Source: Geosiphon pyriformis uo1 (lineage: Eukaryota > Fungi > Glomeromycota). From it: a stretch of 64,000 nt of DNA. The stretch is taken from NCBI GenBank assembly GCA_016748015.1, contig JAAOMT010000436.1, positions 754,033-818,032 on the forward strand. The letters run 5' to 3'. The notes under the pieces were generated by a model. That model did not search any database and was not told where the DNA came from. It worked only from the letters and a program-made list of their open reading frames with translations. Positions 19,883-64,000 of the stretch are shown in pieces. The stretch's first letter is position 1; each line of letters opens with the position of its first letter. The translations under genes and the position numbers were made by a program.

Positions 19883-20059
19883 TCATGTAGTCGATTGATT
19901 GGCTTGATTGATAGATGGCCAATAATTCATGGCTGGCATTGCTTGAGGTAAAGCTGGACGACTTCGAGTCCTCAGCAATTCACATAAATCATCTCCCATC
20001 ACCCGATCACTATCCTCTTCACCAACACCCGGGACAACCCCACCTCTGTGACCATTACT

Positions 20060-20092
<33 letters not shown>

Positions 20093-22074
20093 GCCATTAT
20101 TACAACCAGATCCAGAGCTTCCTACTAAATATGCACCACGATTTCGATTTGACATCAATGGTAACGTTGCTTGTGGAGGTGAATTGGAGCTTAATTTCGT
20201 TGATGAATGACGATAATCAGATCGGTATAACGGTTCCATACTTGAATCAGAAGGTGAAAGACTGCGAACTTGAACATCAGGTAAACCGTTAGCGGTACGA
20301 TTCATAGTAGTATTTGAAGGAGAACTCTCTGGAGAAGAATTTGGCGAGTAAGGATAATTCGGACGATTATCAAACAACGAGGAGTGATCATTAAAATGAC
20401 CATTGTTGTGATTATGATGAGTATTGTTATTACTATTACGATTACTATTACTACTACTATTACTACCACTGCTATTATTACGATCTTTTTGTCTCATCCA
20501 AGGTTCTTCTCCAAGGCCATGAGTATCATCTTCGGTAGTTGAAGTGTATGAAGAGTGGGAAAATTGTTGACCATTATTACCACCACCAACACCACCACCA
20601 CCCGAGGAGTTGTTACCCCGATGACGTCCATGACCATCATCATCGTTCATATCACTATCACCTTTGTAACGTGCAAGCTCAGCACGAAGTTTCCCAATCA
20701 TTGAAGACATTTCTTGCTTTTCTTTTTGCAAGTTTTCCATCATCTTTTTTACATTGTCCAAATCTTTTGCCTTTTGCTCCAAGTCTTTAATGTAACGATC
20801 TTTTCGTTGACGAAAAGCTCGTTGAGCGGCACGATTTTGAGCGGCCCTTTTTGAATTAGTCAAAGTACGACTATTAGAGGGAGATCTAACAGCATTCAAC
20901 ATTACTTGAGACATATCATTTGGAGATTGAGCGAGTGAGCCGGGGGATGGAAGATTTTGTGGGACATTTTGTGACTGGGCTTGATGAGCTAGAATTAGAG
21001 AAGTTTGTGGAACCGGAAAAGTTGGAATTAAGGGGGAAGGATTCAATCCAAGTGTCCCTGAGGATTGTTGTTCATGCATAGCACGTGGGGGCAAAGCAGG
21101 TTTTCCTTCTGGCACTTGAACGAAAGCGAGAGAATGGGACGATACGGTGAAAGGGAAAAAAAGCGAGATAAAAGTGAATGGATTAGAGATAAGTTTATAA
21201 AATAAAATAAAATAAAATAAAGTAAACGGAGGGATAGATAATCAGGTCTACAGGTGGGTGGAGAGACCTTGCAGGGACCGAAATTGTCATAATAATGGTT
21301 TCAGCGTGTACCATAATTATTATTGTGGTGATGGTGGTGGTGGTGGTGGTGGTGGTGGTGTACATTATTTTGCATAGCACAAGCACACAAAAATATTTCC
21401 CGAAATCAAAAGCCACACTAGAGAAAGAGATTGAATCACCATAAAAAGTACCAGGGGTAAAAAAAATTTTCCTCACTGGACAATGCATGGGTGTAAAATC
21501 TACGTTTTTCCTATAGGCCCACAGAATTGAATTTACAGAAAAAAAAAAAAAAACATTAAAAAATTTAATTCTTACATTGAGTATTAGAATATCCGTTGAA
21601 GGGAGCTAAAACATTTGAAGAATTAGATCCGTTGTTTTGAGGCGGATAACCTAAAGGAGAAGGTTGTCCTCTTTTCTCCAAACTGTTCCAACCATTAGAT
21701 GATAGGGTAGCTTGTGGGATTACTTGTTGTGATTGATGGTGATGCGAGGGTTGTTGTTGTTGTTGTTGTTGTTGTTGATGATGAGAGTGGTGGTGGTGAT
21801 GGTGGTGATGGTGGAGTGGAGAGGTTCCATTCGTGGTAGGAGAAGAAGAAGAAGATTGAGAGTGTTGTTGTTGTTGGGATTGTTCAACTGTACTAGGAGG
21901 ACTAACGGTTAGATAATAAGGACTTCCGGCCGTGTTTGGAGGAGGTGGTGGTTGAAGAGTTGGAGTCGAGGTAATATTTGTTTGCCGAAAAGTTGGAGTA
22001 TTTGTATTGGGATTATTTGAAGACAAGGAAAGTTGGTGAGGAGTGTTGTAAACGTTTCCGAACGACATTGTCAT
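19883..22074 (-). CDS. AP-1/Yap-type (KapC-like) bZIP transcription factor, 2 exons (22074-21576, 21114-19883), ~576 aa
   Basis: Basic region SKRAAQNRAAQRAFRQRK plus leucine zipper; His/Gln/Asn/Ser low-complexity tracts; GTAAG donor at 21575 and polypyrimidine-AAG acceptor at 21115 join in phase (T+TG = Leu). Confidence 0.88.
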
Positions 22075-35800: not shown

Positions 35801-38800
35801 CCAGGAAAAACTAATAAATTGGAAGTGGGAAGAAAATAAAAAGGGAAAAGGAAAGAGGAAGAAAAAAGAAACAACACCTGACAGCACCACTACTTATAAT
35901 TTCTACACTATACCCCAATGATCCACTTATTGCTGCCCAAAACTAGTATGCATCAATTGTGGCAAGAAATTGTTATTAATAAATGCTTGTTATGGTAATA
36001 ATAAAAAATACACTTTGGCAACCAAATTCTACTATTGCCCATGCATTATTAAACACTTTGGAAAACCAAAATAAGTTGGAAAATGGGACAATAAACCATG
36101 CTTGGCTTGTAGAGAAACTCTCCCAGACGAAAAAATATGGAATGATATTCCTAGATAAAAAGGAATGTGTGATGAAATATGTCAGTATACAATTCTAATC
36201 AACAACTGGATATGCAAGGGCACACCAATCAATGATGTCTGAAAATGAACATTGTGACAATTGAAAGGATACTTCCATAATAAACACGAATTATGGAGAA
36301 TGGTGAGTGTGAAAACAGAAGGCACAACAACAGTGAACTACTAAAAATCAAAAACAATTCTTTATCTCTTCCTAAACCCGAATACGTCCAAACTTTTGAC
36401 ATCTTTGGCAATATTGAAGATGACCCAGAAGAATTTTATGAACATTACCAGTGTTTAGCATCCACTAGGGAAGAACAAGAGCAGCATTTAGAACAGTTGA
36501 ATACTTGATTATGTCAACATTGTTTAATTCTCTGTGACTTTTAAAATTGTAATAAGTGTGATTTTATTTACAATCCATTGATCTGTATGATTTATACAAT
36601 CTCAGAAGAGGAGAAACCAATCAGCAGCTGTACATTGAAATTAGGATCAACTTTCAATCCTGATTCAAACTCTGACAATAACAACAACAAAAACAATGGT
36701 TTTAGCTCCACTCGATCAGACAAGAAAAATAATGGCAATTTAGATTTCAATTTAAATTCCAAAACATACATTACGCTTCCTGACTTTTTCAAGGAACAAG
36801 AACTCAAATAGTATAGCAACAACAATAAAAGCATCATGCCAGAATGTGCACATGATACAGATGCAGGGTTTAATCTAAGATATCCAGAAAAAGATCTCAT
36901 CAAATTGAAACTTCATTTGCGTATCTGTATTGATCTCAAAATAGTACTGGAAATTCTAACAACAACAATAGTACAATTAGCATCTAGAAGTAGCTTAGCT
37001 AAAAAGGAAATCAACATCAGAGAAGGAATAATTGACACAGGATATGTAGAAAATATCATTGCAATGCTACAAAATGATTCAGAAAAAACATATACCATAG
37101 ACCCAAATGAAAAAATAGCCCAGGCAATATTCTTATCTCTGGTGAAAGTAGCTTAGTTAGTGTTAGTGAGAAACAAGAAAAAATTAGGAATAACAGTAAG
37201 ATGGATATAAAGATTCGGATTCACAGATAAAATAAATGTACCAGTTAATATGACAGAGGAAAAAATTATTGACAAGAGAAAAATTATCTCTATTTGTCAA
37301 TTAATTTCTATTCTATCATATGACCAGTATATGTTAGTCATAAAAAGAGAAGTAAAGAATCAAGTTCAATTGTTTGAAGCAGAAGCTAACATATGTGAAT
37401 CAGGAAAAATTGGACTCACTAATCTTTACATATTAGCCAAAAGTCCCAAAAACATCAAAATTCCCATCTACAATACAACCAGAGATGTCATTGAAATACC
37501 AAAAAGAACCATCATTGGATATTTAACCACTGAAGTTAAGGATCAACAACCCAACTACATTCCAGATTTTTTACAGTTTTGTGAATATGTGGATATCACA
37601 TCACAAACCATTTATGGACAAAGTAAATGTTATCTGCTCCAACTGGAACAATTGGAACAGATAAATTTAAGAAACTTAGACCCACATCAATAGATACAAC
37701 TTAAGATATTACTCAACAATTTCAATAACATCTTTGCCAATGAAGATGAATTTGGCAGAATTAGCATAATTCAGCATCAGATCAAGACTAGAAATGCAAT
37801 GTCAATAAAACAAAGAGCATATAGAGTACCACCAGCCAGTCATGAGATTATTCATCAAAAAATTAACTGAATGCTTGACAACAGGCTAATTCAGCCATTA
37901 ATAAGCCCATGGTTATTACCAGTAGTACTAGTTTAGAAGAAAAATAGAAAGATCCGTTTTTGTGTGGATTATTGAAAACTGAATAGAGTAACTAAAGATG
38001 ATAGCTATTCAACTCCAAAGATCTAAGAACTATTCAATGCTTTTGGAGGAAATAAATGGTTCTTGACACTGGATTTAGATAGTGATTACTGGCAAGTAGC
38101 CATGAAACCAGAAGACAAAAAGAAAACAGCTTTTATAACTCGAGAAGGAAACTTTGAATTCGAAGTAATGTCATTTGGCTTGATAAATGCTCCAGCCACT
38201 TTCCAGTGACTTATGAAAATTGTTTATACTGGGCTACTATGGAAATCAGTCATTGTATACTTGAATGACACCAATGTGTTCTTAAAAACATTTGATGATC
38301 ATTTGCATCATCTCCAACAAGTGTTTGAAAGACTAAGAAGAGTCGGATTAAAGCTAAATGCAACCAAATGTTTCTTTGGAAAAACTGAACTCAAGTTTTT
38401 GGGACATATTGTGAGCAAAAACAGAATCAAAACAGATCCAGACAAAATTGAAATTGTCAAGAACTTTTTAGTACCAAATAATCTCACAGAATTAAGAACA
38501 TTCTTGGGATTTACTGGATACTACTGCTGCTTTATCAAGGACTTTTTCAAAATAGCTCAACCATTACACCAACTCCAAACAAAGAATGTGAAGTACAAAT
38601 GGACAGAAAACCAACAAGAAACTTTTGACATATTAAGAAAAAAGCTTATTCAAGCTTCAGTATTGATGTATTCAGATCACAACAAATCATTCATCATTAC
38701 TACTAATGCATCAAGCCAAGCATTGGGAGCAGTACTATTACAGAGAAAACCAGATGGAAGAGAGCATCCAGTAGCTTATGCCAGTAGAAGCTTAAGTCCA

Positions 38801-40363
38801 GCTGAAAAGAACTATGGAACTTTAGTACTGAAACACTTAGCTATTTATTGGGCTGTCATCAAATAGAAAGAATACTTGAGTCAGAAGTTTGACATATATA
38901 CTGATTACAAAGGATTGACTTCAATTCAGAAACAAGAATTTGGAAATGATTGCCATGCCAAATAGAAAATAGAACTGTTACCATTTAATTATACAGTACA
39001 TTATAAAAAGGGAAAAGACAATGGAAATGCCGACAGTTTGTCATGAATGAGACAAATCTAAAAACATGTTAACCCAAAAATATAACAAAAAATGAATATA
39101 CAAAAATACCAACAACTCCAATATTATATAAATACCCAATTGTTCAAGAAGAAATTATCTCAAAAAGAACAAAACAAATAAAACAACAATTAAAATATTT
39201 TATCAGTCATCAAAATATACTGTACCAGAAAAACAGAAGAAATCCAGACCAGTCAACAAGAGTAATTACAGAACCAGAGAAAGAGACAATATTGTTCAAT
39301 ATGCACTCAGAGCCAACAGCAGGACATTTTCATAAAGAAGCAATTATAAAAAAAACTAGAAAAAAGTATTATTAGCCATTAATGTATCCAGACATCATTC
39401 AGTATGTTCAAAATTGTGATGCTTGTTAGAGAAGAGGAGGAACAAAACTCAGTGAACCATTGAGACCAATCAAAGTGGAACAACCATTTAATCACATTGG
39501 AATTAACTTAGTCAGATCATTAACAATCACCAGTAGAGGCAACAAATATATTGCAGTAGCCATGGACTATTTCACTAAATGGCCAGAAGCAAAAGCCATT
39601 CAAAGAGCAGATGCAGAATTCATTGCCAAATTCATTCATCAAAATCTGATCTGTTAATATGGATGTCCAAAAAAATTATTATCTGATCAAGGAATTCATT
39701 TTGTGAATAGAACATTAGTAGAATTAAGCCAAAAATTTGGAATAAAAAGACCATTATCATCACCATATCATCCACAAACAAATGGATTAGTCGAAAGATT
39801 CAACAGAACACTGTGTGAAACAATAGCCAAAATCAGCCAAAAAAACCAGAACAAATAAGATTTAATTATACCATCAGTATTATTTGCATATCAAACAATA
39901 AAGCAAAACACTATACAAGCAACACTATTTGAATTAGTATATAGTAGAACAGCAACATTACCAGTTGAGATAAAAGTCAAAACATATCCAACAGAACCAA
40001 TAACAGAAGAAAATTTTCAAAGAATATTGTTAAGAAGAACATATGACTTAATGGAAACATTGGAAAACAAACCAAAAAAAGCAGCTGATAACATTTAAAA
40101 GTCACAAGAGAAACAAAAAGAAAGACATGATAACCAATTATCAGATAAACCAGTTGAATTCAAGATTGGAGACAAAGTACTTTTACATCATACTAAAGCA
40201 GAAAAACAATGGAATAGAAAATTTAACCCCAAATAAGACAGACCATTTTACATAGAAGAAATTCTTGGAAATGAAGCTTATAAATTAAGATGAGACAACA
40301 AAATCTTAGCCAAAGCAGCACATGGTAATTGATTGAAACCATATTACCATATAATATCATCAT
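32879..40363 (+). pseudogene. Gag-Pol polyprotein remnant: N-terminal domain, capsid (from 33839), CCHC knuckle (34579), YQP repeats, aspartic protease (DSG, 35281), Cys-rich region, dUTPase, RT, RNase H, integrase
   Basis: CHYCGKQKHLQIDC; LILDSGS; VYLNDT, KCFF, FLGHIV; ASSQALGAVLLQ, PVAYASR; MDYFTKWPEA, SDQG, YHPQTNGLVERFNR. The knuckle and protease are in the same frame. The last codons resume after the insert at 43335-43442. Confidence 0.93.
36836..37230 (+). pseudogene. dUTPase domain within pol
   Basis: Motif 1 AGFNL (AGFDL), motif 2 SRSSLAKKEI, motif 3 GIIDTGY, motif 4 EKIAQAIF, and a decayed motif 5 (..RFGFT from GFGST) near 37210. Confidence 0.9.
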
Positions 40364-60203: not shown

Positions 60204-61902
60204 ATTTCTTTTTTTGTCATCGGGAATTTGATAATACGAATTAGAGATGAAAACTTAGGCTTTCTAATTTGAAAATGATATTTGCTAAGTATCATATTTC
60301 ACGGGTTCGGGAAATTCAAGCGTCAATTTTACCCCTTAAGAAAATTCAGCATTTTATCAATGAGAATTATATATTTGAATTCTGGAGCGTGGAATTATAC
60401 ACCTGCATATTAAAGTACAATATTTCCTTTCGATTTTGATGAAACAAGAGATCATGGAATGAAATTTAGCATATATCTACAAAATTCTTGTTCCGGATTT
60501 TATAAAGACTGTGGCTGATTCATTGTTAAAAGCTTTGAAGATTACGAAACATATTTGTGATTTTGAATAAAAATCACCATTTTTAAAAATTATAAAATAT
60601 AAATGTGAAAAATATAGTTTTAATCCTACAAATAATTATTTTTTAGATTTTATATTATAAAATTAATTTTTTTAATTTGCATAATAAAAAATTTTTAATA
60701 AATTAATTTTTATACTTTTTTTTTTGTTTTTTTATATAATATATAATTAACGTTAAGTTTATTAATATTTATAAACTATTTATTACAAATGGAAAATTAA
60801 TTTCTCTTTTACTAGAAAAAAAAAGCAGATTATATTATATTTACATTTTCCAAAAAACTTACATAGTATCTGTTAATAGTAAAGATTAACCCATTAAGAT
60901 ATTACAAAAAAGGTATATTAAATAATGTAATCAAGCTCAAAAATGAAATATGTGCTTGAAAAAACCATTGATAATGGCATATATAACAAAAACATGATCA
61001 TTTATATTCTTTTTGTAAAAGACAATGAACTTGTTTATAAATAATTTTCATTAATATGGTTTAATTTATATTCAAATTTTCGCCTTTTTCAAAAGAATTG
61101 AAATCTTGATACAAGCACAGATTAGAGTAAAAATAAGATCAAATGATTATTCAATATACTACACTATATCCAAAGACGATTGTTATTCAGATTGTAGAAA
61201 TTTGTTTCAATACGAAAATCAGTGAAAAAAGTAATGAATAAGGAATCTCCAAAGGCACCGCCTCGTCAAAACATGAGACAGGTATCTTACTTCACACTGA
61301 TAAAGATTCTTCAAAGTTAAAAGTCTTGTTGAAAGCTAGAATTGAAAGTGTTGCAACTTTATTTGTGGAAAAAAGTTTAATTTTCAGATTTTTTTAAAAA
61401 AATTTAGTTTTTAGTTTAATTATGGCTGACAATTACTAAGCATAACTTTGGGAAAATATCTTTGTCTTTTTCCAGAAGACGAGAGGTGTAAAGATCATGA
61501 ACTTTGGTGCACCGATCCATCATTTCTCTTGTTTCCCCATTTTTATTATATTTTTACCATTTCGCCTATAAGGAACGTGTAAGCCAAGAATTTTGAATTT
61601 TTGTTAGGTTAAAGCACAATCTTTGTGATAAAATAAAATAAAATAAAATATATAATAATATAATTTGAACACAATTTAATTTCAATTTCAATTTTTTGGC
61701 GTCTGCGAGTTTAATTCCAATTTTGTGGAATTTGTGATTAATTTGTAAATTTAAATTTTTTTTTAACATACTGTATGTTTCATTGATATCTAATAATATT
61801 GCATTATCTTTAGATATTATGAGAATTACTCTTTTTATAACGATAATGATTCATTTACTATGAAAAATTACCTGGGTTTAGGTTTTTCAGAAAATCCTTT
61901 GT

Positions 61903-61979
<77 letters not shown>

Positions 61980-62189
61980 AGTTCAAGTTTCAATTCTTAA
62001 TTTAAAGAAAATTTAAATATTAAAAAAAAAATCGAGGAATTTCTTATAAAATGACTGAACCTATCCCTTCACAACACTTTATCAAAAGAAATTATCTTTT
62101 GAAAAAAAACAACCAAATAATTCCAAAATCTCATCAAACATTTAAAATATATCAAAACCTAATCTCAGGACTAAAAGTTAAAATTTAAA

Positions 62190-62456
62190 ATGTTTCGCCA
62201 TTCAATCCTCAAACCCTTTTCTAGCACAGTATTCTTGTACTTGCTCTTCTGTTTCACTTTTCTTATTATAAGTTTCGACTTGATTCGCTCGTCACCCATC
62301 CCGCCCACCAATAATTTTCGATGGGAACCGTATACCTTTTATGTTCCTCCGTGGCCTCCGTGGCCTCCAGGTTGTCCCAACTGTAACCCTTCTTTTCCAT
62401 CGGATATTTACGAAATAGGTCAATCTCATGGTGGAATATTGGGAGGGCATAAATAA
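62190..62456 (+). CDS. Small secreted Pro/Trp-rich peptide precursor, 88 aa
   Basis: AAAATG context; basic N-terminus and hydrophobic core FLYLLFCFTFLIISF; likely cleavage near S-S/P-I; GC-rich island in AT-rich flanks; has a paralogue. Confidence 0.75.
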   Translation: MFRHSILKPFSSTVFLYLLFCFTFLIISFDLIRSSPIPPTNNFRWEPYTFYVPPWPPWPPGCPNCNPSFPSDIYEIGQSHGGILGGHK

Positions 62457-63336
62457 TGTTTTCAAATTACATATACAAATATTAAGTTTTTAAGAAAATT
62501 TTTTCAAAGCTTTTTTTTACAGTTTATTAAAATTAACTACATAAGCAATATTTTTTAATTTTTAGAATATTACTGTAAAAAACCAAAATCTATATTTTTA
62601 GCCTTGGAAATATCAATTTTACAAAAAAAAAGTTTTTTATTTGTATTTTTTTTTATATAATTAGAAATAAAAAGTTTTTTAAAACTATAAATATTTCTTG
62701 ATTCTTTAAAAAAAATTATAATAACGTAATGTGAATTCATCTGAATCATGAATTGCCATGAATATCATTTTGATTTTTCTTTTCAAAAAATATAATTTAG
62801 TTAAAATATAACTATTAATACCAAATTTCTTTTATTAGATTTTCATAATATAAATAAATTTCAATTTTTTGGCGTTTGCGAGTTTAATTCCAATTTTGTG
62901 GGAATTGTGATTAATTTTTAAATTTAAATTTAAATTTTTTGTCACATATTGTTGTGTATTATATATTGAAACTATTTATATTTCATTAATAGTCTAATAA
63001 TATTTCATTATTTTTAGATATTATGAGAATTACTCTTTTTATAACGACAATGATAAATTTACTATGAAAATTACCTGAGTTTAGGTTTTTCAGAAAATCC
63101 TTTGTCCTTTTTTTTTTTTTTATTGAGTTCAAGTTTCAATTCTTGATTTAGAGAAAATTTAAATATTATAAAAAAAATCGAGGATTTTCTATAAAATGAC
63201 TGAACCTATCCCTTTACAGCACTTTATCAAAAGAAATTATCTTTTGAAAAAAAAACAACCAAATAATTCCAAAATCTCATCAAACATTTAAAATATATCA
63301 AAACTTAATCTCAGGACTAAAAAGTTAAAATTTAAA

Positions 63337-63573
63337 ATGTTTCGCCATTCAATCCTCAAACCCTTTTCTAGCACAGTATTCTTGTACTTGCTCTTCTGTT
63401 TCACTTTTCTTATTATAAGTTTCGACTTGACTCGCTCGTCACCCATCCTGGCAAACAATGATCTAAATATTCTTGTCATTTGGCCTGCTATAGAGAACAA
63501 CTCTAATTCTGGATCATCGCAGACTAAAGCAACAGGTTAACCTCAGGGTGGAATATCGGGAGGGCATAAATAA
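63337..63573 (+). CDS. Paralogous small secreted peptide: 67 aa to TAA 63538, ancestral frame continuing to 63573
   Basis: The first 37 codons differ from the paralogue at one base; TAA 63538 aligns with CAA 62421 and is followed in frame by PQGGISGGHK-stop. Confidence 0.7.
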
Positions 63574-64000
63574 TGTTCAGAATTCGGCGAATATTTAATG
63601 TGAATTATTTCAATTGCAATTGTTTTTTTTTTTTTTCCAAATTACATATACCAAATATTAGGTTTAAGAAAATTTTAAATTAAATTTTTTTCAAGGCTTT
63701 TTTTACAGTTTATTAAAGTTAACTACATAAGTAATGTTTGTTTAATTATTAGAATATTACTGTAAAAAACCAAAATCTACATATATCTTTTTTTTAAAAA
63801 AGGGATATTTATATTTTTTGGCTTTGGAAATATCAACTAACAAATAAAATTTAGCTAAATTTCAAAAAAAAAAAAATTTTTTATATAATTAGAAATAAAC
63901 AGTTTTTTAAAACTATCTTATTTCTTGATTCTTTAAAAAAAAAAAAAAGAGATAATAGCTGTTTTAAATTGCTAATCAATTGACCATTGTCAATTTACCA

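Follow-up and report, generated by a model that had tools for sequence, protein, structure and literature searches.

How can two genes that lie side by side, begin with practically the same sequence and have similar 3' ends encode peptides whose middle parts scarcely resemble each other? The question is raised by a locus at the end of a 64,000-nucleotide (nt) stretch of the Geosiphon pyriformis genome (hereafter the window, C669:754033-818032 of the 128.3-Mb, 792-contig AT-rich assembly that was searched), where two short open reading frames (ORFs), named gene A and gene B, follow each other on the plus strand. A preliminary description had read them as precursors in which a fixed leader and a fixed follower enclose a hypervariable core, in the manner of ribosomally synthesized and post-translationally modified peptides (RiPPs). 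The sequence features on which that description was based are all present. We interpret the locus as a tandem pair from a small orphan family of very short secretory-pathway peptide genes of a Glomeromycotina-type fungus, whose expression and secretion we infer from the DNA, and we give this reading a probability of about 0.6. The conserved module of the family appears to consist of promoter, 5' untranslated region (5'UTR) and signal peptide, and not of leader and follower. The two genes and their parts are located as follows.

62190-62456, plus strand: ORF A, 88 codons and a stop, with a protein that starts MFRHS
62301..62417, plus strand: variable middle of gene A, 39 codons, rich in Pro and aromatic residues, with one CxxC and 48% GC
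62352..62369, plus strand: 9-nt tandem duplication in the middle of gene A (TGGCCTCCG / TGGCCTCCA, giving WPP WPP), single in copy B
62418..62456, plus strand: C-terminal 12 codons and stop of gene A, the "follower" of the preliminary description
63337..63540, plus strand: gene B, 67 codons, ending at TAA 63538-63540 (CAA in gene A)
63337-63447, plus strand: leader of gene B
63448-63534, plus strand: variable middle of gene B
63541..63573, plus strand: follower remnant behind the stop of gene B, untranslated unless read through

The leaders are practically the same, with a single difference in 111 nt of coding sequence, a T>C change at 62284 that turns Ile into Thr, as had been counted before. 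The middles measure 117 nt in A and 87 nt in B, and the difference of 30 nt keeps the frame, again as reported; identity in the aligned columns is 57.5%, beside 30 gap columns, and their DNA alignment contains gaps of 8, 2 and 8 nt. The tails (62418-62456 and 63535-63573) are identical at 35 of 39 bases and occur exactly twice in the window at three or fewer mismatches (0 expected).

These similarities have to be judged against the duplication in which both genes lie. A whole unit of ~1.15 kb was duplicated, and the two units stand in tandem with a direct-repeat spacing of 1145-1228 nt and one short ATG ORF in each. The second unit runs past the end of the window into the adjoining sequence (L004, in which positions 186-740 correspond to window end +186 to +740), where L004:327-416 repeats the final 90 nt of unit A (62757-62846) with 83% identity (repeat D7). 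The promoter and UTRs shared by A and B, correctly noticed in the preliminary description, therefore follow from the duplication of the unit as a whole.

61683..62850, plus strand: tandem unit A (promoter, gene A and 3' flank), as aligned with unit B
62856..64000 and then about 420 nt past the window end, to about L004 position 417, plus strand: tandem unit B
62079..62300, plus strand: block of 99% identity between the units, presumed 5'UTR and leader, with a sharp end at 62300
62045..62051, plus strand: TATAAAA box, about 140 nt upstream of the gene A ATG
63190-63196, plus strand: TATAAAA box of gene B; a similar box lies upstream of the more distant copies described below (four-way alignment)

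The background identity between the two copies is ~90%, with 92-99% on the 5' side and ~84% and many indels on the 3' side. In windows of 50 columns, the far 5' flank shows 91-94% identity and the indel-rich 3' flank mostly 82-95%; identity falls to 44-68% in the middle, and 99% is reached only over 62079-62300, a block of 222 nt with two substitutions (62159 and 62284) and two 1-nt indels. Compared with the 3' flank by Fisher tests, divergence is higher in the middle (p = 1.5e-6) and lower in the 5'UTR plus leader (p = 8e-9), and the tail is not distinguishable (p = 0.48). Two parts of the locus are thus anomalous, the 5' block being frozen and the middle fast, and the "fixed follower" is not a third. 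In our reading, the duplication would be old enough for 10-15% neutral divergence, and the 5' block would since have been homogenised or strongly constrained. Conversion of the flanks, which had been proposed before, agrees with this for the 5'UTR and leader, whose divergence is far lower, as homogenisation or constraint would predict; the 3' tail diverges at the flank rate.

Several further features of the units were recorded. Ahead of gene A, in what is presumed to be its promoter region, a ~75-nt thymine run with one A inside occupies 61905-61979, and only ~14 T stand at the matching position of unit B, a large length polymorphism between duplicates. Directly after the stop of gene B, a 58-nt insertion relative to A (or a deletion in A) occupies 63574-63631, and the 3'UTRs of A and B therefore differ in length from the first base. 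That the unit is a transposable or multicopy element was rejected, since its 5' flank and leader occur only at the loci of this family. C>T mutation of the duplicates of the repeat-induced point mutation (RIP) type was not seen either: the ratio of transitions to transversions is 36:38 for the flanks and 14:23 for the core, a spectrum that is not RIP-like.

How did the middles come to differ so much? They had been called barely alignable, which holds for the peptides, whose similarity is not above that of shuffled sequences (351/2000), and fails for the DNA, whose alignment beats 1998 of 2000 shuffles, and for the in-frame codon alignment, which beats all 500 codon shuffles. Most of the residues conserved between the two middles keep the same codon. 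The middles are thus homologous codon by codon and have diverged in place. Since they are still homologous in frame, no cassette exchange is needed, and replacement by an unrelated sequence, one of the mechanisms considered in the preliminary description, was rejected; a further copy of either core was not found elsewhere in the genome. The idea that a compensated frameshift made the two proteins different found no support, the other frames of one core being unlike the peptide of the other. Slippage-type indels contribute to the length difference, as shown by the 9-nt duplication in A. Over the 29 aligned codons of the middle, the Nei-Gojobori method gave a dN (nonsynonymous divergence) of 0.61 and a dS (synonymous divergence) of 0.31, from changes at ~28 of 66 nonsynonymous and ~5 of 21 synonymous sites, counts too few for significance. 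The strong selection on the core suggested earlier is accordingly matched by the point estimate (dN/dS ~2) and not by a significant test on these 29 codons. In the leader, dS is 0 (0/24 synonymous sites) vs the ~5/21 of the core (p = 0.017). Nonsynonymous change in the middle that may run ahead of the neutral rate points to diversifying selection as a possibility, of which two short sequences are no proof.

A quite different explanation of the variable segment would be that it is an intron, or that another gene model applies, so that the mature products would be nearly identical. Both middles indeed end in AG|GT, and by our reading a splice from the GT at 62272 of gene A would join the tail in frame. 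We nevertheless consider this highly unlikely. From the ATG to the shared TAA the sequence has 38-48% GC, the middles included, vs 15-21% on both sides in the non-coding flanks, with a step-down at the shared stop in both copies; the same contrast marks the coding parts of this genome. Both middles are open in frame with the codon-level homology described above, no GT stands at the boundary between leader and core, and a splice would not remove the TAA of B. The coding reading is further supported by the frame comparison, in which the annotated frame of A, B and a distant paralogue C (below) beats the other two frames by 13-22 bits (codon table from ~2000 codons of neighboring genes), and by the four ATG ORFs of at least 60 codons between 61000 and 64000 vs 0.3 in shuffles.

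One sequencing run, X1, whose type (RNA or DNA) is uncertain, bears on the same point. It contains a 180-nt contig identical to 63400-63579 with 0 differences, TAA included, which is colinear with the genome and unspliced across leader, middle, TAA and tail of B; this argues against the intron, with the limit that the run may be DNA. A second X1 contig of 555 nt at L004:186-740 has a depth of 43.8 vs 2.6 for the contig on B, a 17-fold contrast between two single-copy places that would be odd for DNA and hints that X1 is an RNA run. The stretch L004:186-740 may be the 3' end of a minus-strand vezatin-like gene.

The tail was the second half of the leader and follower architecture proposed for the locus. 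The shared tail is present and restricted to two places; it has diverged (4/39 bases) at least as much as the 3' flank, and in B it is untranslated because TAA 63538-63540 precedes it. All four differences change a residue in the frame of the preliminary description, one of them being the CAA>TAA change itself. The motif G-x-x-x-G-x-[IL]-x-G-G of the tail recurs in the mature part of paralogue C beyond the level predicted from composition (p = 0.006-0.017), which lends weak support to the tail having once been coding in that frame and is not evidence for a follower function.

The leader, by comparison with the tail, has recognizable properties of its own.

62190..62291, plus strand: predicted signal peptide of gene A, residues 1-34 (rule-based, from hydropathy, charge, the -3/-1 residues and the AlphaFold2 helix)

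In gene A, an n-region with charge +2 is followed by a hydrophobic stretch at about residues 13-29 and a predicted cut at IRS↓SPI (rule-based). All family members share a 12-residue n-region with net charge +2, a hydrophobic stretch of 15-17 residues, a polar c-region, a small residue at -1 and an aliphatic residue or Thr at -3 (IRS↓S in A, TRS↓S in B, VRA↓G in C, and IHS↓S), and a conserved (S/D)-P-I follows the predicted cut in each. By these rules alone, the leader has the charged n-region, h-region and -1/-3 c-region of a signal peptide. AlphaFold2, run with an alignment of four sequences, models one helix over residues 9-34, with a block-mean predicted local distance difference test (pLDDT) score of 85-89 over residues 11-30 and nothing ordered after the helix (pLDDT <55). 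The leader thus fits a cleavable signal peptide of 33-34 residues, an unusual length. The predicted mature parts are short and predicted to be disordered: 54 residues in A, with 13 Pro, 9 aromatic residues and one CxxC; 33 residues in B, rich in Asn and Ser; and 29 residues in C, with 7 Lys/Arg vs one Asp (net about +6). The products of A and B are neutral to slightly acidic.

The same features bear on whether the leader would be cleaved at all. It could also stay on as an uncleaved signal anchor, which would make the products tiny type II membrane proteins whose variable part lies outside the cell or in the lumen. A hydrophobic stretch that begins after 12 N-terminal residues, positive charges in front of it and one continuous modeled helix would suit such an anchor. 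A stretch of 15-17 residues is, however, shorter than typical membrane spans, and the polar c-region, the small -1 residue and the following (S/D)-P-I of all members are arranged as at signal-peptidase sites, so that we regard an anchor as rather unlikely.

Is the leader found beyond this pair? More family members had been expected from a leader search, and they exist: when the whole genome was searched in six frames with protein A and a leader profile, only six loci came up, namely A, B and four on another contig, C693. Three of the four are identical 62-codon ORFs (paralogue C) beside runs of N. They lie at L015:5358-6005 and L016:4372-4560 (C693), each just after an N run and with identical upstream sequence. 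Some of these copies may be scaffolding duplicates; they are not all assembly duplicates, because at least two have different 3' flanks. The fourth locus is the following.

L015:2465-2662 (C693): paralogue D, with ATT in place of the start ATG

In D the leader is followed directly by LLKR (a Kex2-type site) and then by a Val/Ile-rich peptide ending in CC. D is probably dead, a pseudogene, to judge from its lost start codon. The leaders of the family members are 50-58% identical in protein. At the DNA level, homology is detected over the 150 nt upstream (A vs C, z = 3.5 over shuffles; A vs D, z = 3.1) and in the leader (z = 9.7 and 11.1, respectively); behind the leader and downstream it is absent in both comparisons (z = -0.8 to 0.9), and the follower is not detectable at the DNA level in C and D. 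Because homology is confined to these parts, promoter, 5'UTR and leader form the heritable module of the family, and the sequence behind the leader is different in every member.

With the family in view, the RiPP-type reading can be weighed, in which tailoring enzymes would recognize leader and follower and excise or modify the hypervariable core. A conserved N-terminal part, a variable middle and a shared 12-residue tail in A are in its favor, as are a core of A rich in Pro, Trp and Cys and two prolyl oligopeptidase genes in the genome. The likeness to fungal RiPPs such as the MSDIN peptides of Amanita and the ustiloxin-type dikaritins lies in a short precursor with a variable peptide between more conserved parts. 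The MSDIN or cycloamanide precursor has ~35 residues, starts with MSDIN and carries no signal peptide; A has 88 residues, starts differently and has a hydrophobic, signal-like leader, and the tail of A and B is not a conserved follower of the kind that stands behind an MSDIN core. Dikaritin precursors also carry a signal peptide, and their repeated cores are separated by Kex2 sites; A and B contain no dibasic site, no Kex2 repeats and no repeat beyond the one 9-nt duplication, and single dibasic sites occur only in C (KRR) and D (KR).

The surroundings agree with these differences. The neighbors of the pair, a SNW/SKIP splicing factor, a 5-formyltetrahydrofolate cyclo-ligase, a vezatin-like protein and a mitochondrial glycerol-3-phosphate dehydrogenase, are housekeeping genes, and no peptide-tailoring enzyme was found within ~10 kb on either side or near either cluster. 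UstYa/DUF3328 (PF11807) had no match in the genome, and control genomes likewise gave none. MSDIN precursors are processed by a dedicated prolyl oligopeptidase of the POPB type. The two loci matching Peptidase_S9_N (prolyl oligopeptidase) are found on other contigs, C642 and C348, and have no linkage to either cluster; housekeeping prolyl oligopeptidases are common, so the two loci say little. The RiPP gene cluster suggested by the proposed architecture is therefore not seen here. The RiPP reading fails in its defining features, because the follower is not conserved beyond flank level, is cut off in B and goes undetected at the DNA level in C and D, and because the leader looks like an ordinary signal peptide, removed by signal peptidase, and has no features of a recognition leader. 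The products of A and B are not RiPP precursors in our judgment, and the chance that this is wrong is very small.

In the preferred reading of a secretory-pathway peptide family, a TATA-box promoter would drive a single-exon mRNA, and the first 33-34 residues of its product would act as an endoplasmic reticulum (ER) signal peptide cut after the small residue given above. A short and probably disordered peptide would be released, of 54 amino acids from A, 33 from B and 29, strongly basic, from C. The evolutionary pattern itself is shown by the sequences. Gene conversion, constraint, or both hold the 5'UTR and signal-peptide block at 99%, and the mature middle has diverged in place, about 4 times faster than the flanks, by substitutions and small indels including the 9-nt slippage. 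The "follower" is the old C-terminus, which drifts at the flank rate and was lost in B by the nonsense mutation. Copy B may be a truncated variant or a dying gene.

Several observations weigh against this interpretation. Run X1, uncertain in type, gives one contig on B and none on A, and transcription is thus unproven. The dN/dS ratio is not significantly >1, and the alignment of a short, indel-rich sequence favors identical codons; alignment bias and indels also inflate the contrast between middle and flanks. The absolute codon-usage scores of A, B and C are near zero. Exact-product look-ups found no recorded gene, with the limit that this genome's own records were possibly not covered. The hydrophobic stretch of 17 residues and the length of 34 residues are at the long end for a signal peptide, which makes an anchor possible. 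One of the six loci has no ATG, another stops early compared with A, and three more are identical copies next to assembly gaps, so that the family could be decaying.

Some of these observations would suit non-functional or barely functional ORFs, either relics of a dying lineage-specific family or proto-genes, whose middle would reflect relaxed constraint and indels and whose 5' block would be a recent gene-conversion tract. The premature TAA of B, the ATT of D, a dN/dS not significantly different from 1, the coding scores of ~0, the unproven transcription, and a product without record or homologue in the collections searched all speak for this reading. Neutral decay, however, cannot exceed the neutral rate, yet the middle is ~4 times more diverged than the flanks. 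Moreover, the net indel of 30 nt leaves the frame intact, and no stop interrupts either middle; leader ORF, promoter and GC island are kept across paralogues with only 56-58% protein identity; and at least two copies of paralogue C that differ in their 3' flanks are intact. We therefore hold decay to be improbable, though a serious alternative to a family of secreted peptides.

What would such peptides do, and is the pattern known from elsewhere? A role as extracellular interaction or surface peptides is likely. That they are Geosiphon-specific interaction peptides, for example at the Nostoc interface or against other microbes, with the module kept uniform by gene conversion and the peptide driven apart by positive selection, is a speculative extension to which we assign a low probability. 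If true, it would be a fungal counterpart of the SSSGP system of a gall midge. In the Hessian fly, the SSSGP genes form tandem clusters of small secreted-protein genes in which promoter, 5'UTR and signal-peptide region are nearly identical and the mature coding region is highly diversified, a pattern explained by positive selection together with concerted homogenisation (Chen et al. 2010, BMC Evol Biol 10:296; PMC2955719). The greater conservation of promoter, 5'UTR and signal peptide than of the mature region in clustered paralogues is found in A and B as well. The insect genes differ in having an intron and a highly conserved 3'UTR, whereas the 3' side is at background level here; only two genes stand at the A/B locus, one of them truncated, and they are known from sequence alone.

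Closer in taxonomy are the AGL genes, which encode intrinsically disordered secreted proteins of Glomeromycotina (Schultz et al. 2022, Mycorrhiza 32:45; PMC8786786). These are small, secreted and co-located, with 82.7-91.3% DNA identity in the signal-coding ends and 41.5-60.8% in the mature region (PMC8786786). A and B belong to the same fungal subphylum and resemble them as a tandem pair with 99% identity in the leader, 57.5% in the middle and 90% in the tail, and the mature parts of A, B and C are likewise predicted to be disordered. In composition they differ, the AGLs being mostly >70% Pro+Gly+Ala (lowest 58%) and the present peptides 35% (A), 21% (B) and 25% (C). AGLs also end in a glycosylphosphatidylinositol (GPI) signal, whereas the tail of A and B consists of 12 polar or Gly residues with no hydrophobic end, and they have an intron next to the signal cleavage site, of which none is evident in A and B. 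A GPI anchor and membership in the AGL family were rejected, the only hydropathy peak in A being the leader (judged by hydropathy only), and no sequence similarity was found. Animal host-defence peptide families follow the same logic: in these multigene families the signal (prepro) region is conserved and is coupled to a short mature part that is hypervariable, and the short, strongly basic paralogue C is like many such peptides. A and B differ in lacking a conserved cysteine framework, an acidic propiece and a processing site; the taxa are unrelated and there is no homology.

The inverse pattern of conservation is thus best read as one already described for SSSGPs and AGLs, and the sequence family itself as new, unannotated and lineage-restricted. 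If it is expressed and secreted, the secretome of the one fungus known to harbor cyanobacteria intracellularly would gain a lineage-restricted peptide family that had no annotation, and the pair would offer a compact case, two genes 1.15 kb apart, in which a secretion module stays uniform while its cargo diverges. Its value lies in a candidate list for secretome and symbiosis work and not in a new mechanism.

Database searches are in line with an orphan family. Pfam returned 0 matches at E<=10, the best E in the PDB was 0.74, and 1.84 billion cluster representatives gave 0 matches at E<=0.001. Neither a word-indexed protein collection, searched with A as well as with the alignment of four members, nor JGI metagenome contigs yielded relatives, and the ESM Atlas gave no usable match. 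Rfam found nothing in the window. Elsewhere in the window, an ORF with reverse-transcriptase and RNase H domains, a fragment of a long terminal repeat (LTR) retroelement, lies at 38213-38866, and the minus strand carries at 19883-21115 one long ORF that encodes a bZIP_1 domain (E = 2e-9).

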